DNA from: Phallusia mammillata | Taxonomy: Eukaryota | Length of the DNA stretch: 64,000 bases | Direction of reading: 5' to 3' | Assembly (NCBI GenBank): GCA_965637545.1 | Contig: OZ281500.1 | Coordinates: forward strand, 22,010,001 to 22,074,000 | Part shown: positions 5,466 through 32,995 of the stretch, one piece after another | How the letters are laid out: every line of letters begins with the position of its first letter | How positions within the stretch are numbered: the first letter of the stretch is position 1 | Made by a program: the position numbers and the translations under genes | Notes under the pieces: generated by a model | What the model saw: only the letters and a program-made list of their open reading frames with translations | What the model was told of the DNA's origin: nothing | Databases searched by the model: none

Positions 5466-5476
5466 GGGAAAGTCCC
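5466..5476. promoter_or_regulatory. kappaB-type site upstream of PB1
   Basis: GGGAAAGTCCC, ~130 bp upstream of ATG 5337. Confidence 0.55.
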
Positions 5477-5975
5477 GACAGCGAAACTTTACAGCAATCT
5501 CGCCATCCTGAGTAAAACCAACAGAGTGAACGACATCAAAATTGTCGTTATTATACTGAGGGCAGCTGAAGGCGTAAAATAACAATTACTTCAACAAAAG
5601 AAGCACAGAATCTCTTTAATACAGCAAGTATTTACAGACAAATAAAAATAATTGCCAAAAAAGTTCAGTTTCCGCTGGAGTCCATCGTTTTAAGCTTTTT
5701 CAGTTGTGGCTCATCTGCAAAAAAGGCATATAATTCAGGCGATAGTCAAGGTCCTCAATGCTAAAGATGGGTAACAATTGCAGAGTATTACTATGCTGGT
5801 AGCTTAACTCTCTTAAAAACGATATTTACTTTTTGTGCTAATTAATGTGCAGGCGTAGCCTAGTAACTGTAGGTAAAACGCTTAGTTCCATAGCACCTAT
5901 TTCCACGACATTTGCCATTGTATAAGCATGTTAGCAAACCAAAGAGCCAATATTGTTGAATTCTTCCAAAGCAAG

Positions 5976-8900
5976 TTACATATTTCGCCATCTGGGTACA
6001 ACAGTTAGATCATCAGCTTCTTGTTCAAAGAACAAACCTTCGATTTCAATGTTGTCCTCCAGTTGTCTTTCTCTCATGTACATCTCCCATAGACATGACA
6101 GTTGTCTTTGATTCTCTCCGAGGACACTTTTCAATGCAGCCAAGTCGTCATTTGCTTCATCTAAAAAGGTTTATAGGCTGAGATCGAAATAAATTGAAAA
6201 CAAGTCCGACTTCATTGTGTTGTACCAGTTTACAACGGTGCAAGCATTTTCAAGTGCATGTAAACTATACAAAATGCCATCTTGACCACCTACTCCCGAA
6301 ACCGCAACCCTTCAACAGTGAGATCTCAAACCAGCCCAATTGGTGCGGAAAAACCGCCATCTTGCCAACACTGTATGTAACACTATTTACGTGCACACTT
6401 AAACGGAGCGTGTGATATTGCGGTTAGGCTATCATGATAAGTCTATTTGACTTCTGTGCTGGCACACGGTTTGTAGAACCAAAAGGTGTTGTAAAGAGGC
6501 TTTTTTGACTTTTACAAAACGCGTAATTCATAAACTGTATTATCAATCTCGCTAACATGCGATCGGTATAAGCCAATATCTTACCATCGGAACGATCCGC
6601 TTTGTTTTCGATAGTGTTTGGCCTGGTCTCTTCCTTCTTTGGCCTTCTAGTTTCTGGCCTATTTGTTGTAGCCGGTTCGTTTACTTTATAAGTTGTCGGT
6701 TCCGTTTCTGCCGTGGCCTCTATATCGTTTCCAATGTGGACAGCAAATTCCAGGTTGGATACGATATTTTGTCTCGTTTCGGCAATCGGTTCGCTGTTGG
6801 TATCCGGTTCCTTCTCTGTGAGGAAATCCTGCTTGCTTTGTGAACTAGTACCGGGTTCGCTCTCTGTAGTACTGGTACCCGTTTCGTTCTCTGAAATACT
6901 GGTACCCGTTTCGTTCTCTGTGTCCCTGGTATCCGGTTCGTTCTCTGTAATACTGGTACCCGCTTCGTTCTCTGAAATACTGGTACCCGTTTCGTTCTCT
7001 GTGTGACTGATATCCACTTCGTTCTCTGTAATACTGGTACCCGGTTCGTTTTCTGTGTCAGTGGTACCCGGTTCGTTCTCTGTAATACTGGTACCCGGTT
7101 CGTTCTCTGTGTCAGTGGTACCCGGTTCGTTCTCCGTAATACTGGTACGTGGTTCGTTCTCTGTGTCAGTGGTACCCGGTTCGTTCTCTGTAATACTGGT
7201 ACCCGGTTCGTTCTCTGTGTCAGTGGCACCCGATTCGTTCTCAGTATTACTGTTACCCGGTTCGTTCTCTGTGTCAGTGGTACCCGGTTCGTTCTCCGTA
7301 ATACTGGTACGCGGTTCGTTCTCTGTGTCAGTGGTACCCGGTTCGTTCTCTGTAATACTGGTACGCGGTTCGTTCTCTGTGTCAATGGTATCCGGTTTGC
7401 TCTGTGCCAGGAAAACTTTCTTGCTTTCTGCACTTGTACCCGTGTAGTTTTCTGTGTTACCACCTGTAATGGTCAGAGCAATATTATTCGAACTATTTTT
7501 TGGTTCGATTTTCGTGTCAGTGCACATTTTATTGTCAATAACTACATCCAGTTTGTTTTGGGGATCCGGTTCTATGCGCTTCGATTCCAAAAACGAAAAG
7601 ATTCCTTTCTTATCATTAACATCAGTTTGGGTCATGCTGCTTCCTCCAAATGAAAAGCTGGCGGGATAAGCATCCTTAATGCTGGGAAATTTGAAGCCAC
7701 TTTCAGTGCTTTTTGGGAATAGATCATTTCCTAGTTTGCTGGCTGCTCCAAGGGAAAATGGGGTTTTGCCACCAACGCTTGTCGATTGTTCAGCTGCAAA
7801 AAAACAATTATTAACAAATCTGAAGGTATTTGCAAAAGTGGTAAATCCAATTATGTTCATGTTTTATTGTTTTATTGCTAGAGTTGTATTAATCCCAAAC
7901 GAGAAAAACATCAGTGGCCTTAAAATTAGGTTTAGTTTTCATTACCTTTTGAGAATGGGGAACTTCCAAACTGAAATACTGAAGATTTTGCACTTAAACT
8001 GTCGGAATCTTTCTTGGCTTTGTCAATAACTACATCCAGTTTGTTTTGGGGATCCGGTTCTATGCGCTTCGATTCCAAAAACGAAAAGATTCCTTTCTTA
8101 TCTTTATCATCAGTTTTTGCCTTGCTGCTTCCTCCAAATGAAAAGCTGGCCGGATAAGCATCCTTAATGCTGGGAAATTTGAAGCCACTTTCAGTGCTTT
8201 TTGGGAATAGATCACTTCCTAGTTTGCTGGCTGCGCCAAAGGAAAATACGGGTTTGTCACCAACGCTTGTCGATTGTTCAGCTGCAAAAAACAATTATTA
8301 ACAAATCTGGGTATTTGCAAAAGTAGTAAATCCAATTTTGACAGCGTCAGTTTTGTGTTTAATTGAGCTAGAGTTGTATTAATCCCTAACGACAAAAACA
8401 TCAGTGGTGTTAAAATTAGGTTTAGTTTTCATTACCTTTTGAGAATGGAACTTCCAAACGAAATACTTGAGCTTTTGCACTAAAACTGTCGGAATCTTTG
8501 TTGGCTCCGTTGTTTACCCATCTGTCAATACATAACGAATTTTTCATACTCTCCCAATAAAGTATTATCGTTTTTAGCCTAATTCCTCTCGCTGACAATT
8601 TATGGCTTTCTCTCTTTTTTTGCTCTGCAGGCTTGTCTGCGTTTTTCAGTGTTGGGCAAAACGTCAGCAAAAAATTGCAAGTTCTTCAAACCAACGCGTG
8701 TTTTTGTGGATTTACTTTTACTTTATCAACTCGTTTGTGGCATAAGACTGTATGTATACACGCAGCTTTTTTAATGATCACATTACTAGTGTGCTTACCC
8801 CGGTGGAGGTCTAAGATTCTCGAAGGTATGGTCACGTGCGTAGCCACCTCTTCTCATATGCACAGAATATCCATCGTTAGTAGTTGTAAACTTTTTATCA

Positions 8901-9166
8901 TCCCAGCGCCACCACCCGCTTAACAACTTGACTTTTACCCTTCTAATTTTTCCTAACTTTTGCAGGCACCGATACATGTACAACCTCCTGTTGTCCAGGC
9001 TGTAGTACTTTCCATCGCGCTGCACTACTCTCATTTCGTTAAACCGACGATCGTACGAACCTGTGGCCATTTGGTCTATCACATCGTTAATTGAACGGCC
9101 ACCGTAAAACTTCGAATGAATATCTTTTTGAGTGAATCTTATTTCTGACGGAGCCAGCTGTATCAT
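5976..9166 (-). CDS. PB2: ParB/Srx-fold domain + FxFG region + acidic TENEPG repeats + helical terminal exon (~727 aa)
   Basis: Exons 9166-8799, 8521-8436, 8281-7946, 7793-6585, 6160-5976; all GT-AG, phases 2,1,1,1 consistent, no internal stop; total 2184 nt. Confidence 0.75.
6850..7390. repeat. 30-bp coding minisatellite (TENEPGTTDT/TENEPGTSIT alternating)
   Basis: Visible tandem units; translation in ORF 6424..7860. Confidence 0.9.
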
Positions 9167-9235
9167 CTTCCTGCCTTACAAAGCGTCTTTGAAACTGACT
9201 TTAGTTTGTATGCTACATCGGCTTTGGGCCCGATC

Positions 9236-9246
9236 GGGGAATACCC
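9236..9246. promoter_or_regulatory. kappaB-type site upstream of PB2
   Basis: GGGGAATACCC, 70 bp upstream of ATG 9166. Confidence 0.5.
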
Positions 9247-10022
9247 GACGAGCGGACCAGAGTTTCCTATCCGTTTTGGTTCGGTTAAGGTTAATTTTGT
9301 TTCACGCTTTGTTGATGATGTGCCTTGTGGTCGTGTTTTAAAAGCTATGAAACGTGGATGAACCTTCACGCAAGGCCGACACACTATAAATTAAACCGTA
9401 TTTTATTACTATTCGTATTTGCAGAAAGAAAACTTTTCTTTTAAATACATTTGTTTTGGCGAGTTTATGGGGTTTATTAGATTTAAGTTTTTATGTCCAG
9501 GTTATGTCCACGCCTTTTTTGATGTACGTCTGTTGCATCAACTTTTTGATGACTTATCACAACTGTTTCAACGCCAAAAGCAGTGTATTCGTGGGCTGCT
9601 GGGTATTAGTTTGCTAAAAAAACGGACAGTGGCAAAGGAAGGCATGTCGGGTTTATAAAATTAGCCAGATTTAAGTATCCTTCCTGTCCTCACAAGGTGG
9701 TGGGTTAAAAACCCTTCTTGTCTTTTTGTCAAACCTTTTTCAAAGGAAGTGGTAAAGATCCTCACACAATTAAAGGTTTTAATCTGTTCTGAAGGCTTAT
9801 TTCGGGAGGAAATGGCCCAAGCGAGTGCTAAATGACGGAACAGCTGACATTCTAGTTTGTTTTAATTTCGCTCCTGTATCCATTTAGACATTTTGTTATT
9901 TATGGTACAAACTATAGAGATCAAATCAGTCCTTAAATGGTACCACGTTTGTCACTACATGGTGCACCATAGATACTCAGCTATAACACTGAGCTTTTAG
10001 ACTTAACAAGATAGCTCTATCA

Positions 10023-10442
10023 CAGCGGTTCCCAAACTGGGGTCCGCGGTCCTTTAGGGGTCCGTGAGGCAATTCTGGGGGGACCGCGAAGCGGTTGAAG
10101 TAATTTTATGATCTTATTTGGCATCAGTTTGTGCCACTAAATAAGTTTAAATCAAAGTAGAATTGAGAATCAACTGTCTCCATTGCTTAACAATAGCCTT
10201 TATTGAATGACAACTATCAAAAATGTAATTGTTCGCGCACAATTGTAGTGCATTTGTCTTGTCTGTGATGTCACAAGCTGTGTTTGGATGACTTTTATGC
10301 GCAATTTTGCATAACTAGCTAAAATCCTGAAATCAACTTTCGTTTTTATGAAATACATATTTAGGCTTAAGGACCGCGAGCCCTCAAAATGAAGGCAAAG
10401 GGACCGTTTTGAAAAAAATATGAAAAAGTTTGGGAACCGCTG
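10023..10442. mobile_element. hAT (Charlie-like) MITE
   Basis: TIRs CAGCGGTTCCCAAAC / GTTTGGGAACCGCTG; perfect 8-bp TSD CTCTATCA (10015-10022, 10443-10450). Confidence 0.92.
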
Positions 10443-10825
10443 CTCTATCAGAACCTTTGTATAATTTGAGTTCTAATTTATTGTCTGATATCCTCCAATA
10501 AAATTTCATTATTTCAGTTGCCACAGAAGATGTTTAACATAATTTAAAAAACTATTAGGTCTTTTAAATTCCTTGGTGATAAGACGCCACAACTATACTC
10601 TAAGTTAAAAAACGCGTTGATTGTAACAATCTGTTCTACACGCACAATGTCAATCTAGCACAAGCACACAATCAGTCAAATGTAACTATTGGTGGACTAT
10701 TTGCACTTTTTTCGTTTCATCGATGGTGATTTGCCTGGAATTAAAAATCGTATTTAGGCTATGTGAGCTTGGATTCGTTACCCAAGATTTAAGATCAATT
10801 TGTACATATTTTTGTTCATTTACAA

Positions 10826-12003
10826 TTAAGACGTGCGAGTAACACCAAACGTACGTTGTTTGTCTCTCTTTTTTGTTCTCCCGTCCAGAGTTTCAGCTTC
10901 TTTGCCAATGGCGTCTTCCGAATCTGCGTCCGGACTGTTTTCACTCATTACATTTTCGAAATCGAGACTTAATCCAGTCTTAGCGGACCTGTTGATGCAC
11001 AGTAATATCTTACGTCAGCTACTGTTTTTTTAAATGCCCCACTGTCCAATATAACGATGTAAATGGAAATCGTTGTTGGTCAAAATATATGATAATAATT
11101 AATTAATGTCTATGCGTTTTTGCACCGAAAAGTTTTATTTAATTTGTTATTGGTTGCATGTATCAATATCACTGTAATAAACCATTAGGTTTGTAGCTTA
11201 CTCTAGAGGACGAGTGTGGTTCTCGAGTGTTTCACATACATAACCATTACTTTTCTTCGCTTGCGATGGACCTGCAACTATAGAACAGAAATAGCGGGAT
11301 TTTGACTTAAAGGTTGGTACGCCATTTCACGGTTATAACAAGTTATACAATTAAATAAACACCTTGTCTGCCTTCCGATCTAAGATTGTAGCCCCCTTGT
11401 ATCTTTGCCGTCAGCCGATCCTCACACTCAATAGCATTTTCATCGACATTTACATTGTCAGACCCTGGACGACCCCTCCCAGTTCTTAAACTCGGTCTAT
11501 TGTTGTTCGTCTTTCTTTTAGTTCTAGCCAATAAAACAGTAAATCGTTGTAAAGGTAAACAAGTAACGTCGTCACAAAATCGCAACTTACCCATGCAGAG
11601 GATTAAGGTTGTCGAAAGTGTGGTCATGCGTTTCTGTACCATCTACAAATTCTACAGAAACCCCATCGTTTTTTGTCGTAAATTTATTCTTATCCCAATC
11701 CTTAATCATCTCGACTTCTATTGTTTCAATTTTGCTCATCTTTTGCAGGCACCGATACATGTAGAGTCTCCTATTGCCCCAACTGTAGAACTCTCCTTCC
11801 CTATTGGTTACTTCCATTGGGTCGAAGTTTGTCTTGCACGAACGTTTGGCCATTTGCCCTACTGCCTCGTGAACGTTAAGACCATTATAAAACTTTGCAG
11901 AAATAGTCTTTTGAGTAAATCGGATTTCTGACGGGTATTTTTTTCTCATTTTTCTCCCTCGACTCTTTTTATCTGAATGATCCACTTTGGTCCTCCGAGG
12001 CAT
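10826..12003 (-). CDS. PB3: basic N-terminus + ParB/Srx-fold domain (YSWGNRRL) + basic/acidic tail with GGYNLRS motif (~268 aa)
   Basis: Exons 12003-11591, 11523-11363, 11271-11202, 10988-10826; phases 2,1,2 all frame-consistent; total 807 nt. Confidence 0.75.
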
Positions 12004-12725
12004 CTTTTCCAGTCGCACAGCCTAAAAGTTGGGACTGACACTGACTTCAAATTGTACTCTTCGTCAGCTTTATTAACCGCCTACCTGACGTCAAGTTCCT
12101 AGGGGAGATTGCCATTGTTCCTAGGGGAGATTGCGAGTACCTGACGTCAAGTTCCTAGGGGAGATTGCCATTGTTACAGGCTTTGTTAAAGAAACGACTT
12201 GTTGATATTGTAACTTCAGGAAGTTGCGCGCCTGACGCTGGCGTTACACTAGAACTGATCTCATTTCCTGAAACGCGTGGATGTATTGAACACGAATAGG
12301 TAGTAATCAATACTGCGACGGCCACTGAAGACACAATTAAGGAAACCAATAAGACTGCACCAAGTTCATTCACCATGAAGCATGTTTAAATTCAAACGGT
12401 TTTCTGTAAAGGTAATACAGAATAAGTGGCATACTCAATTACTTTCACGCCTAACGAAACGATTACCAAAGTTTTGGGCCTTCAGGGTTAACAGACAACC
12501 AAACGTACGGTATCGGCAGGTGATTCTACACAAATAATATTCATCTGTTCCAGTATACAGCAACTGGTACAGTTTTAATATGCAATAAAAACGCGGCTCA
12601 CGCGGTGATGTCAAGGTATGAGCAGTTACACAGCGGCCAACCTTCGTGATGACAGCTGTGAATAACCATTCTTGAATCTGACCCTACGGTAGTTATAAAT
12701 AAGCTATTGCTGCCAGGCATAGCAG

Positions 12726-12807
12726 CAAGTTTATAGAGCTCTTCTGGCAAATGTAATTTGATTGGCCAGATTTGCCTTACATTTGCCAGAAGAGCTCTAT
12801 AAACTTG
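12726..12807. repeat. Perfect 31-bp inverted repeat with 20-bp spacer
   Basis: 12726-12756 CAAGTTTATAGAGCTCTTCTGGCAAATGTAA is the reverse complement of 12777-12807. Confidence 0.9.
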
Positions 12808-12840
12808 ATACAGTAATATAGTGTGGTGTTTTGCGTCAAA

Positions 12841-12905
12841 GGCAGACCGCCAGAAAATTTGGCAGAAATATCATTTTGAGTGAACCGGATTTGTGACGGA
12901 TACAT
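12841..12905 (-). pseudogene. psi-A: truncated 5' fragment of a PB3-like exon 1
   Basis: ATG 12905 reads MYPSQIRFTQNDISAKFSGGL, then homology is lost; upstream sequence resembles the PB3 leader. Confidence 0.8.
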
Positions 12906-13441
12906 TAGTTTTATTTTACTGGTCATATTTTTCGTTTCGTTTAAACTGCCTGAAAGTTGGAACTAAAACTGACTTTAACCTGCCTACTCCAAACGTTTGA
13001 TGTAGGCTTTGTTTAAGACTAATATCACAAAGATATTTCTAACCGCTAAGTTGTCACGCAAGGACGATGAATGTAACAACTTACACATTGTAAATGTAAA
13101 AAATGCAGAAATATAGGACTATATACAAACCATTAAACGGACGAAAACAACAGACTGATAACAGGTTTCGTTTGTGAGAACAAAAAAGGTTGCCAAGCGC
13201 AGAACGGATTAATTACAAGCGTTTGTTTGATGGACAACAGAATTTGTCTGGATTATGCGAAGATCCGGATTACCCGATGCCGATTAGTTAAAGCCTTACC
13301 ACATTACAAATCATTTATACCTCGAGTTTTATATGAATTAGACAAAGATCCCGATTAACCGAATCCGGCTTAAGCGAGGTTTACTATATTTTCAAAACCC
13401 AACGTAACCAAAACACCAATAATACTCCAAAAAATCTTGTC

Positions 13442-13807
13442 TTACCTTGGTGTATAAAGAAGACTGTTGAAAGTATGTGGTCGGGTATGTCCTCCTCTCA
13501 TTTCTATTGAGTATCCGTCATTTTTGGTGGTAAACTGGCTGGTCTGAATAAACGATTTTGTAATAACTTCGACTGTCTTTAACTTTCTTATCTTTTCAAG
13601 CACTCGAAACATGTACAGCCTTCTGTTGTCATAACTGTAATATTTTCCATCTTTTTCCGCTACTGCCATTCTTGGTAATTGATCAACAGACGTTCTGCCA
13701 GCCAGTATATCGTCTATTGTTTCATTTACACCCTTACTTCTTCGAAATTTCCAGTTAATGCTGTCTTGCATAAACCTTATCTCAGACGGCGTTAATGTCA
13801 TCAACAT
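13442..13807 (-). CDS. PB4: ParB/Srx-fold exon 1 (downstream exons not found)
   Basis: ATG 13807; YSYDNRRL; phase-2 donor AG|GTAAGA after 13446; near-identical to PB5 exon 1. Confidence 0.8.
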   Translation of the reverse strand: MLMTLTPSEIRFMQDSINWKFRRSKGVNETIDDILAGRTSVDQLPRMAVAEKDGKYYSYDNRRLYMFRVLEKIRKLKTVEVITKSFIQTSQFTTKNDGYSIEMRGGHTRPHTFNSLLYTPR

Positions 13808-13868
13808 TTTGGTGACTACGTCTTGTACCACCAAATAAATTAAGTTTTAACACAACGTTGAACAAAAA

Positions 13869-13879
13869 GGGGAATTCCC
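13869..13879. promoter_or_regulatory. kappaB-type site upstream of PB4
   Basis: GGGGAATTCCC, 62 bp upstream of ATG 13807. Confidence 0.6.
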
Positions 13880-13982
13880 ATATACAAATCTGTACTTTTG
13901 AAGGAGTATTGTCTGTTTCTTGTTTCGTTACAATGGCGACTTGTTTATCTAGTTATGGACAATTGTGCTGAACGGCACCGGG

Positions 13983-14277
13983 GGTAGAGCTACTAACACC
14001 ATACTTTTCGCCTGATCCAAAAGTGCTTAATTTTCGAAACGGTATATCTCAAAAAATGCTAACAGTTAGGGCTATTAGGGTTGGGGTAAGGTATTAGCAC
14101 TTAAAATTCAATAAAACTAACCCAAGAAATTAGTTACCAATGTAAAAGTTTTATGTAAATATTTCCCAACCCCACCCATTTATAGCCGCTAAATAAATAA
14201 TTCAGCTCTTTACGCCACCTATCGAAAATTAAGCACTTTTGGATCAGGCGAAACGTATGGTGTTAGTAGCTCTACCG
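13983..14277. mobile_element. MITE with long TIRs and 9-bp TSD (Mutator- or Merlin-like)
   Basis: ~55-bp TIRs starting GGTAGAGCTACTAACACCATAC; 9-bp TSD GGCACCGGG at 13974-13982 and 14278-14286. Confidence 0.85.
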
Positions 14278-15126
14278 GCACCGGGAAGTTTCAAAAGGTA
14301 TAACGGGTTGACCTCTACCCAACATAGCGGTCTATACTTGTCCGATATTCGGCGGTGTCGGACCAAATACCGATACCTTAATAAACGAGTAAACGTGCCT
14401 TAGTTTGTAGTTTTTGCCACAACCTTTTGCGAAAATGCTCTTTACCCAATCGCTAATGCATCACAATTGTTCGTCTCTGAAAACGTATAAAACGTGCCGA
14501 TAGAACGATTTGCCGAATCCGCAATTTTTTATATGTGGTCACTAAAGTATCAGGTGTCAGATTGTTGAATATATCGGATTGAAAACTGGGTATCTCGCCA
14601 TCCTTAGTGAAAACCAACAGGATGAACGACATAAAATGGTCAAAATTTACTTTATTACGCAGAGGGCAGCTCCGCAACACAACAATTACTTCAACAAAAA
14701 AGCACAAAATCTCTGTAATACAGCAATTATTTACAGACGAAGAAAAATAATTGCCCAAAAAGTTCAGTTTCCGCTGAAGTCCATCGTTCTAAGCTTTTTC
14801 GCTTGAGGCTCATCTGCAAAAAGGCATATAATTCAGGCGATAGTCAAGGCCCATAACGCTTAAGATGAATGACAATTGCAGAGTAATACTAAAGCTGGTA
14901 TATCTTAACACTTTTAAAAACGATATTTCTTTTTGTACTAACTACTAAGTAATATGCAGGCGTAGTCTAGTAAATACACTTAGTTTCATTGAAACTATTT
15001 CCACGACATTTAGCATTGTAACTTATAAGCATGTCACCTAAGCAAAGAGCCAAATTTGTAACTTATAATGTTCCGAAATAAGTTATATTTTGCCAGCTGG
15101 GTACATGAGTTTAGATCATTAGATAG

Positions 15127-18281: not shown

Positions 18282-18414
18282 TTTTGTGACTACGTCCAGT
18301 GATTTATGAATATATTCAACACAACATCAACCGAAAAAATACCTACTGAACCAGAAGGACCACCAAATGAATTAAATTCAACACAGCACAGTCAAAACAT
18401 CACTGATCAAAAAA

Positions 18415-18425
18415 GGGGAATTCCC
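18415..18425. promoter_or_regulatory. kappaB-type site upstream of PB5
   Basis: GGGGAATTCCC, 134 bp upstream of ATG 18281. Confidence 0.6.
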
Positions 18426-19062: not shown

Positions 19063-19138
19063 CTTCCTATCCTGTAAAGCTGCGTTATAAATTGGTCACA
19101 ACCCACAATACGTTTGTTTTCTGCAGCAGGGCCTAATT

Positions 19139-22906: not shown

Positions 22907-23263
22907 TTAAAAAGTGTGATCCCTTGTAATGTCGTTTAAAACCTGCACTGAATAGCCATCGTTTTTTGTTGTAAACTTGCTGTGATCCCAAAAAATATTC
23001 AATTCAACTTCAACTCTGTAGACCACTCCCATCTTTTCCAGCACTCGAAGCACATAAAGCCTTCTGTTGTCCAAACTGTAATACTTGTCAATACTTCTTT
23101 GAACTTTTATTTTATCGAAAGCATATTTTACAGACAATCTTCCGGCAGCTATATCGTCTATCATTTTATTGACATTGCGGTGACCATACATCTCACAGTT
23201 TATAGTGTCTTGAGTAAATCTAATTTCCGAAGGGTACAACCGGATTATTTCACCGTCAGACAT
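22907..23263 (-). CDS. PB7: ParB/Srx-fold exon 1 with a stop just before the conserved donor
   Basis: ATG 23263 (MSDGEIIRLYPSEIRF); YSLDNRRL; TAA at 22909-22907; phase-2 donor AG|GTAAGT still present after 22893. Confidence 0.75.
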   Translation of the reverse strand: MSDGEIIRLYPSEIRFTQDTINCEMYGHRNVNKMIDDIAAGRLSVKYAFDKIKVQRSIDKYYSLDNRRLYVLRVLEKMGVVYRVEVELNIFWDHSKFTTKNDGYSVQVLNDITRDHTF

Positions 23264-23349
23264 CTTTACGAGGTTCTGTGTTAGCCTACAACGACTGCCA
23301 ACATAAGCTTGTTCACGGTAATGTACTGCCAACAAACTATTGTTTCGGA

Positions 23350-23360
23350 GGGGAATACCC
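23350..23360. promoter_or_regulatory. kappaB-type site upstream of PB7 (IRF-like AGTTTCACTTTT at 23375-23386)
   Basis: GGGGAATACCC, 87 bp upstream of ATG 23263. Confidence 0.5.
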
Positions 23361-24144
23361 TTCAACAGGACAAGAGTTTCACTTTTACTTTTGTCAAATG
23401 GCTGTATTTTATGAAAACCAGCAGTGTTACCCTGTCACAAGCTTATCTATTTAGGGTTAAAGTGAAAACCTGTTGTTATGTGATTTCCTTTAATGAATAA
23501 AACGTTGGGGTTTAGTGTTTGAAGTCAATATTCACTTGTTCATCCCGCTCTATACTTGTTACTGATGTTTCCTTAAAGCCAAGATAAAAATACTGGCCAA
23601 CGACAAGCTAACTGTGGTCTTGAAACTTCTATGTATTTTTGCCAAGGTTCTGCAGTCGGAAATTATGTATTATATAGGTGCTTGCTAGGGATTTGACAAC
23701 CAGTTCATACGTAATAGCGTATGGAATTCTTGGTGACGGAAATCGAAGTTATGTTGGACGTTTTTGGTATCTTGTATTGTTTCAACGATCAGAAGTTGTG
23801 GCTGCGGACAGCTTACTGGGGTTAATGTTCAGCTTTTGCGTAAGGTTTAAAAGCCGGACACAAAAACCACAAACACTTTCTCGAATCAGTCTGACTGAAC
23901 AAAAACGAACGAGGATAATACAACTACAAACCTAAACCTTGGTTGTAATTCTGTTTGTTCATTTTACAATACAAGGGCGAAGCTTATGTTACCACAACAT
24001 GATGGTGACTGAGTGCAAATGTTTAACATTCCAAATTTGAAGTGTTAACTGACAGTGATTTGTTGACGTTTTTCTGCCACATACCTTTTCAATGTAAAAA
24101 AAAATCTTTACTACACGATATCAAAAATTACTAGGAAATGAGTT

Positions 24145-25088
24145 TTATGATCGTTTGAGATCGAACAGCGAAGACGTGTGTCCTGGGACGTACGCCATCT
24201 TAGAATGCGGTTCTTAAAACAATAACAGATCAATTGTTATCTGAATTCACAAACCATCCATTAATTTTTTACCTAGTTTCTTTATTTTTAGCCTTTTCAT
24301 TTTGTTTCTTCTTTTCTTTGCTTTTTTATCCACAACAACGGGTTGGTCTTCTAAACAGGGACGTTTAGCGGAAACAGATCCTTCTGATTCTTCTTGTTGA
24401 TTAGGGCGTTTATTGGAATTTTTTTCTCCCGATTTTGTTGTGGATTCTCTGTTGATAAAGTTGAATTGTCGAGTTACAAAGGCGTTTAGACGCCTAGGTC
24501 TCATTTAGTGAATTAGTACCCAAAATGTTCAAACCTTTTGCAAAAATTGGTTTACTGGCACAAAAGCTTTCGGTTTCCACTTTTCATGCACCGAAACGTA
24601 AAAAAAATTGGTAACAACTAACGCAGTATTCATTTAACAATGGTCTCAATCTATTTTATTTTGCGACCCTCTTTATAAGGATTTTCCATAACAATATAAA
24701 GAAACACTGCGTTAAATCAATAGTTTTACCCAGACGGTGGCAAAAGACTATCGAAGGTGTGGTCCCTTGTTTCATCGAATCTAACTCTAACTGAATAGCC
24801 GTCGTCTTTTGTTGTAAACTTACTACTATCCCATGAACATGGGAAATATACTTCCACTTCTTTCAGTTTACCCATCTTTTCCAACACCCGAAATACGTAA
24901 AGTCTTCTATTGTCCAAACTGTAATACTTTATATCGCGTACTGCCACTTTGATGTTATCGAACTCAGCTTCGATTGACGTTCTGTCTGCCGCTATATCGT
25001 CCGCTATTGAGTTGACATTTTCGAAAAAGGAAAATTCACGTTGAATAGTGTCCTGAGTAAACCTGATCTGAGACGGTGCTAACCTCAT
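24145..25088 (-). CDS. PB8: ParB/Srx-fold domain + lysine-rich NLS-like tail (~215 aa)
   Basis: Exons 25088-24730, 24493-24273 (SAKRPCLE..KKAKKRRNKMKRLKIKK), 24212-24145; phases 2,1. Exon 2 could instead read through to the stop at 24247. Confidence 0.7.
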
Positions 25089-25882
25089 TTTTCTGCTTTA
25101 GATTTAGGCATTTTTGTATGAAAAAACTGGGCAACAAACACAATTGGTAAGCCACAATGAGCAAAAGCTTAAGATCATTATTGTCAGCTGGCACAACTAC
25201 ACCGCTGTTCAATACCCCAACAAAAAAAAAAAGCTTTTGTTTGTTTTCGGGTGTATTAGATTTCATTTTACAGATGTTGGGTGTGTATTGTTTTCGCAAT
25301 TTTTACCTTGTCCCAACATTTCAGCTAAATGTGTTATATTGCTGGCAAAGCCATTGTCATTAAATTCACTTCTAACGTATATTTAGACTGTTTTATGAAG
25401 AACAGGTACAAAGCATAAATCATTTATGCTTTATACTTTGTACCTCTAAATATACTACTGATAAGAAGCAGAATCTTTTTTACATTCTATTGTCTGCGGG
25501 AGATTCCTTAGGTGACAAAAGTTTTTCAGCATAATTGGGATTTGGGATTTAGAATTTGTGTGAAACAACTAAACGCCATTTTTTAGTGGGAATGGGTTTA
25601 GTGTCTTGTTGTTGACACTGCGTTTGACAAGGCATAAAAATTAAAAAAAAGGAAAATAGCTTTTAGTTTTAATAACCCACAACAGATTTACATTACATAC
25701 GTATTGAAAAAAATACAATAAAGGGGGTTTCAGGCGTTTGAAACGGACTAAAATATGTTAACTATGTAGCTAAGACAATCTAAAGAGAATTTCCCAAAGC
25801 GAAAAGAACCATACGAAAATAAGTTCCACAAAAATTTATTTTTAAGCGCTGTGATAACATCAGCGTAAGCATGAACTGCAGT

Positions 25883-26626
25883 CTACGGTTTCACGTCATA
25901 CATATGGCTGGGATCAGGTTCACTTTTGCGCTTCTTTTCCAACGGTTTATCTGTAAAAACATCAACCACGACTTTAGGCTTATACCAACGATGTTCTCAA
26001 ATACTCCAAGTTCAATACCTTCATTTTTGCTGTGTTTATTTTTTCTCTTACTTTTCTCCTTGACTTTTACGTCTTGATATTTTTGCTCCTCCAGGGCAAC
26101 TTGTTGTTCTGTTGGAAAGCTTCTGTACGTTGAACAGTATGCAAATAAATTCGTAATGACAGCGAGAAATTTTCACACTGATTAAACGTTGGTTTAATTG
26201 CTTACGTGTATTGTTTTGTCTTACAGTATAAGACACAAATTTTAATTGGTTCTCTTACCTTACTGGGGTTGGATCACTTTCATGGTTCCTGGTTTCGTCG
26301 CCTAAAACTTTTACCGATTTGCCGTTGTTTTCTGTTGTAAATTTACTATCGTTCCAGTTTATCAATTCAACTTCCACCTGAGATAGTGTTCCCATCTTTT
26401 CCAGCACCCGAAATAGATAAAGTCTTCTGTTGTCCCAACTGTAATAGTACTTGTCATGTATTGCAACTTTGATATTATCGAGCGCACCGTTAATGGATAT
26501 TTCGCCTGCTGCTATACTGTCTATCATCTTATTAACGTTGCGATTCTCGTGCATCTCACTATTTATGGTGGCCTGAGTAAACCTAATGTTTGACGGTTTT
26601 AACCAGATCGTATCCCCGACAGACAT
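25883..26626 (-). CDS. PB9: ParB/Srx-fold domain (YSWDNRRL) + short basic tail with KKRK (~179 aa)
   Basis: Exons 26626-26259, 26122-26019 (alternative donor after 26052), 25950-25883 (DKPLEKKRKSEPDPSHMYDVKP*); phases 2,1. Confidence 0.7.
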
Positions 26627-26706
26627 CTTGACAAGGTTGTTCACAGATAACTGACAAAATGTCCTTGTTCAATGTACTGAACGGACCGAAGAACCATTGT
26701 TCCTGA

Positions 26707-26717
26707 GGGGAATACCC
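26707..26717. promoter_or_regulatory. kappaB-type site upstream of PB9
   Basis: GGGGAATACCC, 81 bp upstream of ATG 26626. Confidence 0.5.
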
Positions 26718-27512
26718 TTCAACAAAACAATGGATTTATTTACACCCATCTCAAATGACTGTGACTTATCAATACCCTATTACGCTGTCACACCTTCGTG
26801 CTCGCAAAACGTATAGTATACTTGGCGTAGTTTAGTAAAGATTTTATATTCTAAACGTGTCAGCATTTGGAAAAAAGCTGTTAGCAGGTGGAAATAAAAA
26901 AAAAATTAATGACCCTCTAGCAAATGGGACTCATATTTAACGTTGTTTTATTGTTCCTACGATTCGTTGCATAAACCATATCAGTATCCAACAGAACCAA
27001 CAGAAACGTACGCATGTTTTTGTCACATTACTTCCCATTTGTAGCACAATCGTTTTACAAGTTACCTTTTAGATCGAACGTTATATCAACCTCAATAAGC
27101 AAGAAAACAAAATCTTTTTTGGGTAGCAATGATTGTTTCTGTATGCTGTTAAAGCAGAGACGGCAACGTGAAGAATCATATGGAAAAATATCATAATGAT
27201 TGTATTGTAAGTACAAATATTTGGAACATACAGTATACACATACGCAATTACACGTACAATATCAGTTGTTAATTTAAAACTCTGTCATAGACGGCAGAT
27301 GCAGAGAGGCGGTCACAATGCAAAACGCTATGTACTTAAATACTCCGTTCAATTTTATGCTCGAAAAACCATTTAGTGATGCATGCAACCTTTTTTTCCA
27401 AAAAAATACGAGGAATGTCACAGACAAATACCCAGTCAAGCATTGCGTGTGTTCATTTTGGTGCTGGATGTAAAGTGATTACTGTTGAAATTAACATTTT
27501 GCATGTTCAGCA

Positions 27513-29359
27513 ATGCTTTGGTTGGCACCATCGAATATTCGGTTTACCCAAGACTCCATCGATAGTTTTTTATATGGTTGTCGATATATCCACACGATTA
27601 TAGACGATATAGCATCAGGAAAACTGTGGATAGAAACTGCCTTTGACAACATCAGAGTTGCAAAACGTGATGGAAAGTATTACAGTTTGGACAATAGAAG
27701 ACTTTACATATTTCGTGTGTTGGAAAAGATGGGTAAATTGAGACATGTGGAAGTAAAAATGACCAATCGTTGGAACAGTGAGAAGTTTACAACACTAGAC
27801 GACGGCTATTCGATTGAAGTTAGAGATGATTGCACCAGGGACCACACCTTTGAGAACCTTCTTCCACCGCGCAGGTAAAATCCAAATTATTCAAAATGCG
27901 GCGTTCGTTTTTCATGTCTCATACAAGTGTTGGTAAGTAATACAATTAGGCGGTTATATTTTAGGTTTTTTATTGTTGGTGACAATTATGCTACAGTAAC
28001 GTTTTTGCATTTTTCGCATGTTATGGTCAGATTGTAAAGTTGACGTCTTGCTTTACAGTACGCCAATGAAAACGGAAAAGAAAGCCGAAGTCAATACGAC
28101 AAAAGTGGAAGAAATTTGCAATGACAAAAGTAAGTCTCATTCAGTCAGATTGCACATCTATGGGCACAGTGTCTAAAACCTGTTTAAGCAAATTTCACGC
28201 GTAAAGAAACTAAACTTGCATTGAAACGCTCCATAAAAAGCTAGTTTCAACAAACGAAACATGGGATAGGTTAGTTACGATAATAAAAAGTTTTCATAAC
28301 AAACCAGGCGTCGCGGTGGATAATGCTGCGGCTTCATTGGATCGGAAAGAGCCATTTTTCGCCAAACAGATTGAACACAGCGAAATCATTGAAGATGAAT
28401 TGAATGCAGCATCAGGGAACAAAACGGTTGAATGTACAGAAAACAAACCAAGTGACGTTGACAACGAATCGGGCTCTTTTAAAGAAAATAAAGCGAGTAA
28501 TGTCACAGGAAACGAAGTAAGTGAAATTAAAGAGAAAAAAACTGCTGCAACTACGGAGAGCGCCCATGATATAGCCAAGGAGGGGAAACATAATGATGCC
28601 ATAAAAAACGAACCTGATAAATTGTCAGTGGACAAACTCGACGGGAGTGCAGAAAATACAGTAGGTGAAAAGGTTACGAAAATCGAGCAAGATACATTTA
28701 CGCTTCAAGATAATAAACAAGTAAAGTTCGCGGTAATTGAATCTGCATCCGAATTAGAACCGGTTCCAGTTGCAAAAAGCATACTGCACGAATTCACAAA
28801 AAACAAACCGGACATAGTTTTAGATAAAGAGGACCAACAAGTTTGCGACTCCCTGGAATCGGATACAAACTTCCAGAAATCGGAACCAGATTCTTTGGAA
28901 ACTGCTAAGGAACCTCAGAATTCGGACATAAACTTCCAGGAAACGGCTGAAAACCTCTACAAATTGAATAGTAACTTTCAAAAATTGGCTAAAAACCCAC
29001 ACAAATCAGAAGAAAACATACATGAAAATTTACTGGATTCGGATAAAAACTCACAGGAGTCTAAGGAAAACCTACATGAAACGAATGAGAACCTTCAGGA
29101 ACCGGATAATATCCCGTTGGAACCGGATGCAATCCAAACGACTGAACCGGATATTGTAACTATTACGACTAAAATTAGTCAAAAATGCTTTGAGCTAAAC
29201 AAAGTGCAAACCTTCATAGATAATAGTGCAACCTGTTTGGTATTCGATGGTAAAGAGTCTGCTGACGTAGATGGCTTAGAGAGCTCCGTCACCGAGTTTG
29301 AAAAAAATGATGACGGATCGCCAGAAGCAAAACGGAGAAAAATTTGCTACGAAGATTAG
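27513..29359 (+). CDS. PB10: ParB/Srx-fold domain + acidic disordered region + C-terminal NLS PEAKRRK (~494 aa)
   Basis: Exons 27513-27874, 28059-28129, 28308-29359; phases 2,1; total 1485 nt. Confidence 0.8.
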
Positions 29360-29686
29360 TTAAAGTGACTTATCAAATCTCTATGTAGTTATTCTTGTAC
29401 ATACATGTTATTTGTAGAGGTTTTGTATAGCATTGCCAGTTTAACGTGTATATAGGCCCAATTTATCGCGTACCTAATGATCAGTTGCACTGATATGATT
29501 TATTTTGCTGAGGAAAAGAGCGCGTGACGAAATAATAGCAATAACCATAGAAATATGCCCGGGTTTGCCGCCCCTTAACAGCCATAGCGAAACAGAACAG
29601 TGCACACCTTGATTGCCTCGCCCACAGCTACGCCTCAAAACACATTAAAACCCATTTTGTGACGGTCGAACTCCCGTTTCGGTGTC

Positions 29687-29697
29687 GGGTATTTCCC
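29687..29697. promoter_or_regulatory. kappaB-type site upstream of PB11
   Basis: GGGTATTTCCC (reverse complement GGGAAATACCC), 110 bp upstream of ATG 29807. Confidence 0.5.
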
Positions 29698-29806
29698 TTT
29701 GAAAACAAAAAAGGACGAGCAATGTCACAGACAAATACGCAGTGATTTAGTTAGTTCACTCGTTATGTTTCAAAGACGGTTGGATTTTGGTAGTTTGGCG
29801 AATAAT

Positions 29807-31516
29807 ATGGTTTGGCTGGCACCATCGCAAATTAGATTTACCCAGGACACTATTAATCGTGAATTATACGGTCATCTGAATGTTAACGATATGATAGATG
29901 ACATAGCGGCCGGCAGAAAGTCAGTTACAACCGAGTTCGAAAACATCAAAGTTGCAGAACGTGATGGAAAGTATTACAGTTTGGACAACAGAAGATTGTA
30001 CATCTTTCGTGTATTGCAAAAGATCAGAAAGCTAGAACGTGTGGAAGTAATTATGAGTCCTTGGAACAGTGGGAAGTTTACAACAAAAAACGACGGCTAT
30101 TCGATTAAGGTTTTAAGAGATAGGACTAGATTTCACACTTTTGACAACCTTTTGCCTCCACCAAGGTAAAAATGTTTAAAATGTCCCTTAAACATTTTTG
30201 TGTTCGTCTGATTTAAACGGGTGTCTTACTTGCTTTGCAGTACGGCAGTAAAATTTGAGAACAACGTTAGCAATGACGGTACAAGACCCGAAAAGCGCAA
30301 AATGGAACAAAAAACGATTGTCAATAGTGAGTCGAAATCAGTCGAACATACTGTGTACATAGATGTTAATTGCACTCATTTTAATTTCACTAACTGAAGG
30401 CACTAACCTTACACCAAAACGGTCCATAAATAGCCTGGTTTTGACGTACTTAAAATGGGATAGGTTTGTTACGATATTAAAAATGTTTTTTGAACCAAAC
30501 CAGGCGTCGCGTTGAAGAGAGGTGCGGTCCCACAGGAGTGGAAAAAGACGATTGTCGCCCATCAGACAATCGAACGCAGCGAGATCATTACAAATGAATT
30601 GATTGCTACATCGGGGAACAAAACGGTTGAATCCTTAGATAACAAGCCAAGTGATGCCAATACCGAATTGGTTACAATCAGAGAAAACGAAGCAAGTTAT
30701 GTCACAAGCAGCAAAGCGAGTAAAATTACAACGAATGAAGGTACGGATTCTACAGAAGACATGGCTGCTGCATTTGGAAAAGGAGCTGTTGAAATACAGG
30801 ACGTCCCAGATATATCCAACGAGAGGAATTTAAATTATGCCATAAATGACGAACCGGGTAAAATGGCAGTTGGTGAGCTAGATGCCACTACCGAAGACAA
30901 ACAAGGTGATGACGTCACCAAGGAAGAACCGGATATGCTCACTGCTAAAGAGAACGAACTGGTAAAGGCCAAGACATATAAATCTATATCCGCAAAGTTG
31001 GAACCGGTTCCGGCTTCGAAAAGCGAACTTCATGAATCCATAGAGAAAGAACCGGGTACAGATGCAGATAAAGAGAACAAACAAATTTGCGTCTCCAAGG
31101 ATTCGGATACAAACTGCCAGGAATCGGGTGAAAACTTCCAGGAATCGGATATAAACTTTCAGGAATCGGATAAAAACTCTCAGAAGTCAAAGGTAAACGC
31201 ACAGGAAACAAACGAGAGCCTTCAGGAGCCAGATAAAACCCACCTGGAACCGGATCAAAACTTCCAGGAATTGGATGTAAACCCACACGAACCGGATGCA
31301 ATCATAACACATAGTCCGAAGATTACACCAACTATGGCTGAATTTACAGAAAAATACAGTGAGTTTAACAAAGTGGAAATGGTGATGGATAACAGTAGAA
31401 CCCGTTTTTCATCCAGTAATGATGTTTCAGCTAACGTAGATATGTCCAAGAGTTCTGTCACCAAGTTGGAAAGAAATGATGACGGACAGCCAGCAAAAAA
31501 ACGTACAAAAATTTGA
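29807..31516 (+). CDS. PB11: ParB/Srx-fold domain + acidic disordered region + C-terminal NLS PAKKRTK (~485 aa)
   Basis: Exons 29807-30165, 30241-30326, 30504-31516; phases 2,1; total 1458 nt. Confidence 0.8.
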
Positions 31517-32984
31517 AACGAATAATAGCTAAAGTGACATGTCCAAATCTATTGTACATACATGTTACTTCTATAGGCCTGTACTCGTATTATCGCCAAA
31601 TTCTGTATGTATATTAATGATCAATTGTACCGATTTATTTTATTTTGCCTGGCAAAGGATTGCAAGGCGAAAAGTAACAGTAATAAAGTAGAAATACATA
31701 TCGGTGTTGTCTTTAGCCTATTCTGTGCTCCTGTATACATTCCAAACAAAAAAATAACTCTATTTGGGCGAATATGAAAAGATAGCAAAAATGCAACGGA
31801 GAGTTGCGGATGGTAAATAGATTCCAGTGTGGGACTTTCAATAATAATTAACCCAGTATGCCATTGTTGCGGAATTCCACGAATAATAGTTATTTTGGTT
31901 TTATTGCGTCATCTGTTGGTTCACACATTATCTGACAATGGCAATTCAAACAGATTTCAAACCAAAAGTTGATACTTGGCCAACAAACGAATTCGGTGTG
32001 CGTCATTTTTTTGCCTGAATCAGTCAGTTATTTTAAAGATTAGGTTTCGGGCGAAGAGTTCGTTGCGATTCCGCCGAAACCGAATCATTTACGAATACAG
32101 ATTTAAAGCGCACAACATTCCTTTGTCTGCTTTATAAGGTGCCATACAACCTTTAAATTACGCAAGAACAAAATTCGCGCCATCTATTACGATTTTTAAA
32201 ACATTATTGTTTTTGCCCACTCTAGACATAACGTCAATAATTGAAGCAGGCTGGCGAACATGACGTAGGTAACCTTCAAACCTATAGACCTAAAACGAGA
32301 ATTAAACACAATTCTTCTGTAAACATCAATGTTTATCTGGTAGTAAAACATGTGTTTGAAAAACATGTACATGTCAAAGCGTATAGCGAACGGCTTCGCG
32401 TGATATTATGGATGATTTGATTGATTCCGAATTTGCTGGGCTAAAACTACCGAATGTTCGGTTTCGGTGCGCACCCGATTTAGCGGATGCAGGGCATCAC
32501 CACGTCAAATATAAAAAAAAACGTAAATAATTTTGTTGTTGATAGTTTTAAAGCAGTGGAAGAAATTTCTTTTTGTTTTAATTATCACAACAGAACGTTT
32601 GAATTAACAAAAAAAAACAGTTTACAATACTTTTTAAATAAATGTAGACTGGAAAATATCGGAAAGTCAAATGAACGACTGCGTGTTTTAAGCACATTCT
32701 TTCTTAACTATTCCGTCTAATGTTGATTCCCTGTCGTTGCTTAATTAGAACTAACAATGATCGTTTTAACATGTCATTGAGTATGTTTGTGGACACTGTG
32801 GCACAATGCAAAACGTGGCCTAAAGATGGACAAAATAACTTTGTGCAAAGCGGTGGGTGAGTAAAGAGAAGGTTACCAGTTGTTGCTGAAAACGAAACCT
32901 GTACCAATCGCACTCGCGCATTGTTCAGACAAGACACCCTGGGCGAAACCCAATTCACGGTGGTACAACACTTGTTTCGATAAC

Positions 32985-32995
32985 GGGTATTTCCC
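32985..32995. promoter_or_regulatory. kappaB-type site upstream of PB12
   Basis: GGGTATTTCCC, 106 bp upstream of ATG 33101. Confidence 0.5.

Follow-up and report, generated by a model that had tools for sequence, protein, structure and literature searches.

An 11-bp, kappaB-like element stands at a conserved promoter-proximal position ahead of eight PB genes and one pseudogene in the 64-kb stretch of Phallusia mammillata DNA analysed here (the window), and it recurs in front of PB homologues of two other sea squirts; comparison of paralogues and homologues shows it to be a conserved cis-element under selection. Since the 11-mer is nearly universal ahead of the PB genes and also precedes related genes of two further sea squirts, an NF-kB-like pathway probably turns the PB genes on; here we infer both the identity of the factor (NF-kB/Rel) and the inducibility of the genes from the DNA itself.

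The domain encoded by the first coding exons of the PB genes (Table 1) is a ParB/Srx-fold domain of the Tox-ParBL1 type, with relatives at the ends of polymorphic toxins of bacteria. Its AlphaFold2 model (pLDDT 91.6) has the ParB/sulfiredoxin fold, the top Foldseek matches all being Srx, ParB, Noc, KorB or SerK structures with a probability of 0.99–1.0, but with E-values of about 5e-3 and TM-scores of 0.4–0.5. The hallmarks of Tox-ParBL1, a conserved N-terminal Ser and an [NT][RT][RT] motif (Zhang et al. 2012, PMC3482391), are both present in the 20 sequences aligned, with S7 found in at least 90% of them and N60-R61-R62 invariant, and profile searching returned proteins carrying PT-TG (PF14449), PT-HINT (PF07591) or 'filamentous hemagglutinin' annotations at E-values of 1e-20 to 1e-23, which shows homology with the C-terminal domains of polymorphic toxins. 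No model of the PB domain itself was found above the cut-off in Pfam, and sequence searches of the PDB, whether started from one protein or from a profile, gave chance-level matches only. Joining the PB exons to the acidic open reading frames downstream was tried and rejected, the conserved ACCAG|GCG acceptor being out of phase with the phase-2 donor.

Table 1. PB genes, kappaB-like sites and variant or degenerate promoter elements in the window (distances before the ATG are spacers between site and ATG)
Feature	Position	Strand	Description
Twelve PB genes	4951..33463	both	first coding exons encode ~120-aa Tox-ParBL1-type ParB/Srx-fold domain
PB1	4954-5337	-	first coding exon
PB2	8798-9166	-	first coding exon
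PB3	11590-11949	-	first coding exon
PB4	13445-13807	-	first coding exon
PB5	17919-18281	-	first coding exon
PB6	21793-22173	-	first coding exon
PB7	22910-23263	-	first coding exon
PB8	24729-25088	-	first coding exon
PB9	26258-26626	-	first coding exon
PB10	27513-27875	+	first coding exon
PB11	29807-30166	+	first coding exon
PB12	33101-33460	+	first coding exon
Right-hand PB subfamily R1-R8	39393..63489	-	C-terminal extensions
PB1 kappaB-like site	5466..5476	-	+ strand GGGAAAGTCCC; gene orientation GGGACTTTCCC; 128 nt before ATG at 5337
PB2 kappaB-like site	9236..9246	-	+ strand GGGGAATACCC; gene orientation GGGTATTCCCC; 69 nt before ATG at 9166; GAAAC at -20
PB4 kappaB-like site	13869..13879	-	GGGAATTCCCC (+ strand GGGGAATTCCC); 61 nt before ATG at 13807
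PB5 kappaB-like site	18415..18425	-	GGGAATTCCCC (+ strand GGGGAATTCCC); 133 nt before ATG at 18281
psi-B kappaB-like site	19139..19149	-	GGGAATTCCCC (+ strand GGGGAATTCCC); ahead of PB2-like pseudogene, ATG-equivalent at 19062
PB7 kappaB-like site	23350..23360	-	GGGTATTCCCC (+ strand GGGGAATACCC); 86 nt before ATG at 23263; AAAAGTGAAACT precedes site
PB9 kappaB-like site	26707..26717	-	GGGTATTCCCC (+ strand GGGGAATACCC); 80 nt before ATG at 26626
PB11 kappaB-like site	29687..29697	+	GGGTATTTCCC; 109 nt before ATG at 29807
PB12 kappaB-like site	32985..32995	+	GGGTATTTCCC; 105 nt before ATG at 33101
PB3 promoter variant	12102..12169	-	three GGCAATCTCCCC copies in gene orientation, one with a mismatch; two full CRE palindromes TGACGTCA
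PB6 degenerate remnant	22275..22285	-	GGGACTTGACC; homologous position
PB8 degenerate remnant	25207..25217	-	GGGTATTGAAC; homologous position

A sequence-only reading had placed nine 11-mers about 60–135 bp upstream of the ATG, and all nine were found at the + strand coordinates that it had given, with measured spacers of 61–133 nt. The nine intact sites comprise four sequence variants, one identical 11-mer being common to PB2, PB7 and PB9 and another to PB11 and PB12, while the PB1 site contains the exact Ig-kappa/HIV decamer GGGACTTTCC, and those of PB4, PB5 and psi-B contain the palindromic decamer GGGAATTCCC. In gene orientation all nine conform to the consensus GGG[A/T][A/C]TT[T/C]CCC, and their orientation relative to the gene is identical throughout, with genes lying on both strands. 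Upstream of PB12 there is also a second GGGCGAAACCC, at 32941.

Across the 64-kb window GGGN5CCC has 12 matches against 2.9 expected, a count reached in none of 100 shuffles, and is the most over-represented of the 64 patterns of the form XXX-N5-rc(XXX); nine of these 12 matches fall within the 200 bp upstream of PB start codons, which constitute 3.75% of the window. Values of dS between PB subgroups range from 1.3 to not computable (saturated), and the element was the sole strongly conserved block in an unguided MAFFT alignment, a count of 7-mer words likewise bringing only GGGTATT and ATTCCCC above shuffles. The flanks had been described as otherwise divergent, and their identity between paralogues is indeed near the shuffled baseline, but a weaker second conserved block lies 6–20 bp upstream of the kappaB-like site. 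Because the unguided alignment and the unbiased word count both single out the element, and the paralogues are old, it is a footprint of selection and not a remnant of duplication, its position being conserved beyond what neutral descent would leave. Saturated dS and recurrence in Clavelina and Ciona homologues thus argue for a function of the element, although an intact site alone is no proof of current selection on the copy concerned, since psi-B, which is a true pseudogene and whose reading frame is broken by at least five stops down to 18640, carries a perfect one.

In its composition the element looks like a Rel-homology site. All nine window sites, and five of the six found in Clavelina and Ciona, fit the 11-bp G3-N5-C3 frame, the spacing preferred by p50 homodimers (PMC10527052). 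A match of the nine to Rel/NF-kB (p50-type) consensus sites had been reported; the strict decamer GGGRNWYYCC, read on either strand, is matched by only four of them (PB1, PB4, PB5 and psi-B), the three copies of GGGGAATACCC and two of GGGTATTTCCC being one position off, and the PB3 12-mers lie outside every standard kappaB consensus. Gel shifts have shown binding of GGGAATTCCC by NF-kB proteins of organisms as distant as protists and humans (PMC8677719), and an LPS-responsive NF-kB gene exists in ascidians (PMC8537429); the window itself contains none of the Rel genes of the species. Six of the nine sites are accompanied by GAAAC at -20 (PB2, psi-B, PB7) or GTTTC at -11 (PB1, PB11, PB12), where P=0.005 is uncorrected for the testing of all 5-mers; when compared with the IRF-type GAAANNGAAA(C), only PB7, with its AAAAGTGAAACT, resembles a full IRF site.

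Among the 12 left and central genes, four with intact open reading frames (PB3, PB6, PB8 and PB10) have no intact site. PB6 and PB8 retain degenerate remnants at the homologous position, and PB10, which is divergent to PB9, has no site of its own, that of PB9 being located 796 nt upstream of it. In PB6 the donor-like site that closes the open reading frame has lost its GT as well, and a separate GGGAGATTCC is found at 25498, i.e., at -419 from the PB8 ATG. Ahead of PB3 the three copies attributed earlier to a micro-duplication were recovered, with GGGGAGATTGCC on the + strand at 12102 and 12158 and a third copy, differing by one mismatch, at 12124, all produced by duplication of a 36-bp unit on either side of a partial copy; some 20 bp further downstream stands TAATAAA, and the repeat is no canonical kappaB site. 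In the right-hand subfamily neither GGGN5CCC nor a decamer match was found within 500 bp upstream of any of the genes R1-R8.

The recurrence of the element in other species is new here. In a sample of 14 PB homologues from Clavelina, Ciona and Styela and 18 neighbouring genes, for each of which the 400 bp before the ATG were searched, a strict site was present in five homologues (from Clavelina and Ciona) and in none of the neighbouring genes (Fisher P=0.01, binomial 3e-4), counts which are partly dependent, the three genes at the Clavelina locus L014 being paralogues. These three have GGGGAATACCC at -95, GGGGAATTCCC at -149 and GGGGAATCCCC at -104, copy 2 containing the exact decamer GGGAATTCCC; the gene at Clavelina L007 has GGGAAATACCC at -125, and that at Ciona L008 (LOC108950579) has sites at -311 (GGGAAATTCCC) and -99. 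Four of the five site-bearing homologues have an element at -95 to -149 (the range of -90 to -150 was picked after the data were seen), and two of the sequences are identical to those of the window, with the orientation relative to the gene inverted in Clavelina. In one Clavelina copy TATATAAA stands some 40 bp downstream of the element, which puts the element at about -75 relative to the predicted start. The other nine of the 14 homologues have no element within 400 bp of the ATG, and GGGN5CCC is absent from the whole of the short contigs on which the metagenome-derived homologues P0001 and P0002 lie. In the tree of homologues the deep branching of the ascidian genes was not resolved, and site presence could not be mapped onto orthology groups. 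No paper on kappaB sites in ascidian promoters was among the top literature matches, and none was found that names the Ciona or Styela homologues by LOC number.

Transcripts of PB2, PB3 and PB4 were absent from the contigs of four RNA-type runs from four studies (runs only guessed to be RNA), in which the region 8701-14700 gave dispersed-repeat matches only, and an index search returned no RNA run containing 22801-32800. This absence is compatible with silent inducible genes and equally with genes that are stage- or tissue-restricted or dead. Among the window promoters a TATA-like box is found only at psi-B and PB3, and since most have none, the site may be part of a leader or outron that is transcribed.

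The explanation that we consider probable is that a dimeric factor of the Rel-homology type, most likely NF-kB/Rel, binds the 11-mers as functional, promoter-proximal sites in the p50-type 11-bp register, and that they were kept from an ancestral PB promoter. According to it the 11-mer would already have been present in the ancestral promoter of these Tox-ParBL1-type genes, and purifying selection would have kept it in three old paralogue clades and in the homologues from other sea squirts, with the non-coding DNA around it becoming randomised. The PB genes would be off or very low at rest, until a signal releases or activates the Rel factor, which would then reach the site some 50–100 bp upstream of the transcription start, possibly helped by the CRE in PB3 and by GAAAC-type half-sites in several others.

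A selected cis-element could, however, also be read by another factor (an NFAT-type Rel-homology protein, CSL/Su(H), an Ikaros-like zinc finger or a novel ascidian factor) or by Rel in development, setting tissue or stage specificity and not pathogen inducibility. Deviation of five of the nine sites from the strict decamer speaks for this, as do the adjoining second block and the PB3 swap to a repeat plus CRE, which suggest a composite element; ascidian Rel also has a developmental role, and the missing transcripts would fit narrow tissue or stage expression equally well. On the other hand the sites bear the signature of Rel-homology dimers, with invariant G3/C3 arms, a 5-bp core rich in A/T, a dyad of 11 bp and exact copies of GGGACTTTCC and GGGAATTCCC; EBF, STAT, HSF and TEAD gave no fit in a by-eye comparison with their consensus sequences, and the TTCCCAC of CSL is not conserved across the sites, so that we hold this reading to be rather unlikely.

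Far less probable still is that the sites are functionless, being leftovers of a duplicated ancestral promoter or products of gene conversion noticed for their resemblance to a famous motif: with dS saturated between the motif-sharing clades, 11 neutral bases would have been lost, conversion tracts would have brought along their flanks, whereas these are near random, and in Clavelina and Ciona the motif stands at the same distance, in opposite orientation, and is missing from all of the neighbouring genes. Simple inheritance from a single ancestral gene would nevertheless account for the uniform orientation, for the perfect copy in psi-B and for several intact genes without a site. Least credible to us is an element that acts in the transcript (5' leader or outron), where it could form a small hairpin or direct processing, instead of serving as a DNA site. 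The general lack of TATA boxes, the frequent trans-splicing of ascidian genes and the self-complementarity of GGGAATTCCC could all be cited for it, but GGGTATTCCCC and GGGTATTTCCC allow a 3-bp stem only, the inverted Clavelina orientation suits a DNA site and not an RNA signal, and a TATA box lies downstream of the element both in PB3 and in copy 3 of Clavelina L014.

Beyond binding by a Rel-homology factor, we put forward as a tentative proposal that the bacterial-toxin-derived Tox-ParBL1 arrays (~20 copies) may be under direct p50-type NF-kB control, perhaps assisted by a co-activator resembling IkB-zeta and by an IRF/CRE partner, and may constitute an undescribed inducible innate-immune effector arm whose promoter logic would be older than the split of the ascidian orders. 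Tunicates are the closest invertebrate relatives of vertebrates, and to our knowledge direct NF-kB target promoters are hardly known in them, the natural target promoters of NF-kB from early-branching lineages or invertebrate chordates being largely unknown as well. The locus is a compact, naturally replicated test set of nine intact sites in four variants with built-in contrasts, namely natural knock-outs at the same position (PB6, PB8, PB10), the rearranged PB3 and a site-free sister subfamily, and it has counterparts in Ciona, where promoter reporters are routine. Should the sites work, a domesticated bacterial toxin domain would be tied to the NF-kB pathway and the 11-bp p50-type architecture would be in use in invertebrate chordates; should Rel not bind them, the element would be a new conserved ascidian cis-element.

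Several known systems can be compared with this one. Antimicrobial-peptide promoters of Drosophila have kappaB sites for Relish, Dif and Dorsal (Dorsal consensus GGGWWWWCCM), and the PB genes share with them a tandemly duplicated family with a kappaB site within about 150 bp of the starts, a putative effector role and, in GGGTATTCCC, a fit to GGGW4CCC. The Drosophila sites differ in being experimentally validated, usually multiple per promoter and often paired with GATA sites, whereas most PB promoters have one site only, for which CRE or GAAAC may be partners. Mammalian 11-bp kappaB sites, used by p50 homodimers with the IkB-zeta co-activator in the IL-6 and NGAL promoters (PMC10527052), have the same G3-N5-C3 register, A/T-rich core and promoter-proximal position, and their targets are silent until stimulated, a likeness that is putative for the PB genes; five PB sites, in contrast, carry T or A at positions for which the vertebrate decamer calls for R or Y, and the genes are unrelated to cytokines or lipocalins. 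The palindromic probe GGGAATTCCC, bound by NF-kB of Capsaspora, choanoflagellates, sponge, cnidarians and human (PMC8677719), is a laboratory probe and not a natural promoter, but the exact decamer occurs in PB4, PB5, psi-B and Clavelina L014 copy 2. With regard to the protein, the regulation of Tox-ParBL1 is not discussed by Zhang et al. 2012 (PMC3482391); the PB domain has in common with Tox-ParBL1 of bacterial polymorphic toxins and its eukaryotic copies the ParB-like fold, the N-terminal Ser and the N-R-R motif, and PB proteins score at E-values of about 1e-20 against toxin ends carrying PT-TG, PT-HINT or FHA modules. Unlike bacterial Tox-ParBL1, it is N-terminal and is encoded by animal genes with introns that lie in tandem arrays.

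A pattern search recovered the nine kappaB-like sites, 11-mers upstream of eight Tox-ParBL1-type PB genes and of the PB2-like pseudogene psi-B, exactly where the sequence-only reading had placed them. The 64-kb window contains 12 occurrences of GGGN5CCC, whereas dinucleotide-preserving shuffles (n = 100, of which 0 reached 12) predict 2.9. All 64 motifs that pair a trinucleotide with its reverse complement across N5 (XXX-N5-reverse complement) were compared, and this fourfold excess was the highest among them. Nine of the 12 matches lie in the 200-bp intervals preceding the PB start codons, which make up 3.75% of the window. Read in gene orientation, all nine sites conform to GGG[A/T][A/C]TT[T/C]CCC regardless of gene strand, with one identical 11-mer common to PB2, PB7 and PB9 and another to PB11 and PB12; they start at -72 to -144 from the chosen ATG (minus positions are bp upstream of the ATG unless another reference is named), and the measured spacers of 61–133 nt agree with the distance of about 60–135 bp, on both strands, proposed previously. 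Decayed versions of the site are found at the aligned position in PB6 (GGGACTTGACC) and PB8 (GGGTATTGAAC), no site was found upstream of PB10, and the right-hand subfamily, with eight genes, has none within 500 bp upstream of any member. The PB3 promoter contains three copies of GGCAATCTCCCC and a TAATAAA box, the only clear TATA-like box within the array apart from the pseudogene; the origin of this triple repeat by micro-duplication was confirmed, the duplicated unit being 36 bp long.

The 11-mer is a selected promoter element common to several ascidian species, and the original observation is confirmed and strengthened. In an unguided MAFFT alignment of twelve 300-bp upstream regions it forms the one strongly conserved block, and its two halves, GGGTATT and ATTCCCC, were alone among 7-mers in recurring across more promoters than in any shuffle when words were counted without bias. 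PB4 and PB5 have a synonymous divergence of 0.07 and PB1 and PB6 one of 0.29, and between PB subgroups the values range from 1.3 to not computable, i.e., saturated. In the tree the site-bearing genes are distributed over three old clades, each with its own support (PB1/6/4/5, PB2/3 and PB7-12); 11 bases would not persist neutrally so far, so that retention as a leftover of descent is not credible, even if psi-B, with at least five stops, still has a perfect site, which is an awkward point. Gene conversion is argued against as well, since it would bring the flanks along and both upstream and downstream flanks have an identity near that of shuffled sequences. The earlier description of the flanks as otherwise divergent holds except for the youngest pairs and a weak second footprint beside the element.

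Selection on the element was also addressed by a cross-species site test, which is new in this analysis and covers nine genomic loci from Clavelina, Ciona and Styela; these carry 14 PB-family genes, whose first coding exons were placed by tblastn. A strict site is present within 400 bp of the ATG in five of these 14 genes and absent from that interval in the other nine, compared with 0 of the 18 neighbouring non-PB genes (Fisher P = 0.01), and the probability of at least 5/14 at the background site density of the same loci is 3e-4, the three genes of the Clavelina locus L014 being paralogues and the positional window having been picked after the fact. Two of the Clavelina/Ciona sites are identical in sequence to sites of the window. 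In Clavelina the element has the inverse orientation with respect to its gene, and one copy is followed about 40 bp downstream by TATATAAA, so that it would lie at roughly -75 counted from the predicted start. That the element acts as an RNA-level signal is argued against by the Clavelina arrangement, inverted but kept, and upstream of a TATA box, as is expected of a DNA-binding site.

Coordinates of the promoter elements, pseudogene, repeats and ORFs in the window, and sites in other ascidians
Feature	Position	Strand	Detail
kappaB-like sites (starts)	5466, 9236, 13869, 18415, 19139, 23350, 26707, 29687, 32985		PB1, PB2, PB4, PB5, psi-B, PB7, PB9, PB11, PB12
PB3 promoter	12060-12180	minus	two perfect CRE palindromes TGACGTCA in duplicated 36-bp unit, TAATAAA after
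psi-B	18640-19062	minus	PB2-like pseudogene, at least 5 in-frame stops, D-N-R-R-L motif destroyed
Second footprint	6-20 bp upstream of sites		GAAAC at -20 from the site: PB2, psi-B, PB7; GTTTC at -11 from the site: PB1, PB11, PB12
Clavelina L014, three tandem genes	-95; -149; -104		GGGGAATACCC; GGGGAATTCCC; GGGGAATCCCC
Clavelina L007b	-125		GGGAAATACCC
Clavelina L007a, neighbour of L007b	-139		near-match GGGGAATTCAC
Ciona L008	-311; -99		GGGAAATTCCC; GGGGGTTGCCC
PB ORF 3' end exceptions			PB6: GT lost; PB7: stop 18 nt ahead of donor
Long acidic low-complexity ORFs after PB exons, same strand	2700-3857, 6424-8294, 15610-16722	minus	
Long acidic low-complexity ORFs after PB exons, same strand	28316-29359, 30512-31516, 34351-35382	plus	
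Dispersed repeats with contig coverage	10016-10450, 12695-12790, 13241-13330, 14040-14260		
Recent segmental duplication	45000-50200 and 58800-64000		offset 13,794 bp

The second footprint is weak, with GAAAC or GTTTC at its position relative to the kappaB-like site in six of the nine promoters (P = 0.005, uncorrected). Both words look like halves of GAAAC-N4-GTTTC, the PB7 copy, AAAAGTGAAACT, being IRF-like, and in copies 2 and 3 of Clavelina L014 GAAAACAGTTTCG is found immediately downstream of the site.

About 20 genes make up the tandem array of the window, and each of their ORFs encodes a domain of about 120 residues with the invariant blocks P-S-x-I-R-F, Y-S-x-D-N-R-R-L-Y and F-T-T-x-N-D-G. 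Its recent segmental duplication (99.8% identity between 49001-50000 and 62795-63794) results in the identical gene pairs R4/R7 and R5/R8 of the right-hand subfamily. No Pfam family scored above its cut-off for the PB domain and PDB sequence searches returned nothing; AlphaFold2, run on the aligned paralogues, gave a confident model (pLDDT 91.6), and all top Foldseek matches have the ParB/sulfiredoxin fold (Srx, ParB, Noc, KorB, SerK), these being weak (E ~5e-3, TM 0.4–0.5). A profile search gave 495 relatives, including cephalopod proteins, bacterial polymorphic toxins that match at their C-terminal ends and carry PT-TG, PT-HINT or haemagglutinin modules, and uncharacterised ascidian proteins of Clavelina lepadiformis, Ciona intestinalis and Styela clava (best identities to PB 48–54%). 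Two PB-family proteins of Clavelina, P0003 and P0004, each have two tandem Tox-ParBL1-like domains (L007:10001-12745; L011:10001-11478), and the Ciona homologue with kappaB-like sites adjoins a Macro + PARP gene (L008:2468-6111), of a type often tied to antiviral responses in other animals. Judging by its conserved Ser and N-R-R motif, the PB domain carries the signature of Tox-ParBL1, a family defined by Zhang et al. 2012 with its presence in metazoans already mentioned (PMC3482391).

PB ORFs of the window (4951-33463) close with AG/GTAA(G/A), the apparent TAA stop lying inside a phase-2 donor-like site. In the homologues from Ciona and Clavelina, a phase-2 intron is annotated at this codon (L008:10364-10372; L014:10376-10384), so that each PB ORF probably represents only the initial coding exon of a gene that continues beyond it. 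Behind six PB exons, the acidic ORFs contain 27-nt TENEPGT-type repeats and FxFG-like stretches, some ending in KRRK-type basic motifs, and probably represent further downstream exons of the PB genes, a candidate link. The conserved ACCAG/GCG acceptor, being out of phase with the donor, did not establish a junction of the PB exon to the acidic-repeat ORF.

None of the public runs recorded as RNA contains 22801-32800. Four RNA-type runs, each from a different study and only guessed to be RNA, were compared as contigs with 8701-14700 at 90% likeness. PB2, PB3 and PB4 were covered by none, coverage being limited to short dispersed repeats that give 90–99% matches to many contigs in all four runs, overlap no kappaB-like site and probably represent interspersed elements, MITE-like or other. 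The absence of PB2, PB3 and PB4 contigs is compatible with genes silent until induced, without being support for induction.

As for the factor reading the element, GGGACTTTCC at PB1 is the founding Ig-kappa/HIV kappaB decamer, and GGGTATTCCC also matches the Dorsal-type GGGW4CCC consensus. The proposed match to Rel/NF-kB consensus sites stood in part: strict GGGRNWYYCC applies to PB1, PB4, PB5 and psi-B only, the other five of the nine sites missing the vertebrate decamer by one base, which counts against a simple Rel reading. NF-kB proteins of organisms ranging from protists to humans bind GGGAATTCCC as a probe (PMC8677719), p50 homodimers favour GGGGAATTCCCC in the 11-bp register, such sites driving IkB-zeta-dependent genes (PMC10527052), and an LPS-responsive NF-kB gene is present in ascidians (PMC8537429). 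Rel/NF-kB is the best-supported reading of the factor at the predicted sites, one that we infer with moderate confidence, and immune inducibility of the PB genes would be a plausible candidate property. Elements of this kind are already known, and the one described here is a further example, which accompanies a family of toxin-derived genes that is uncharacterised.
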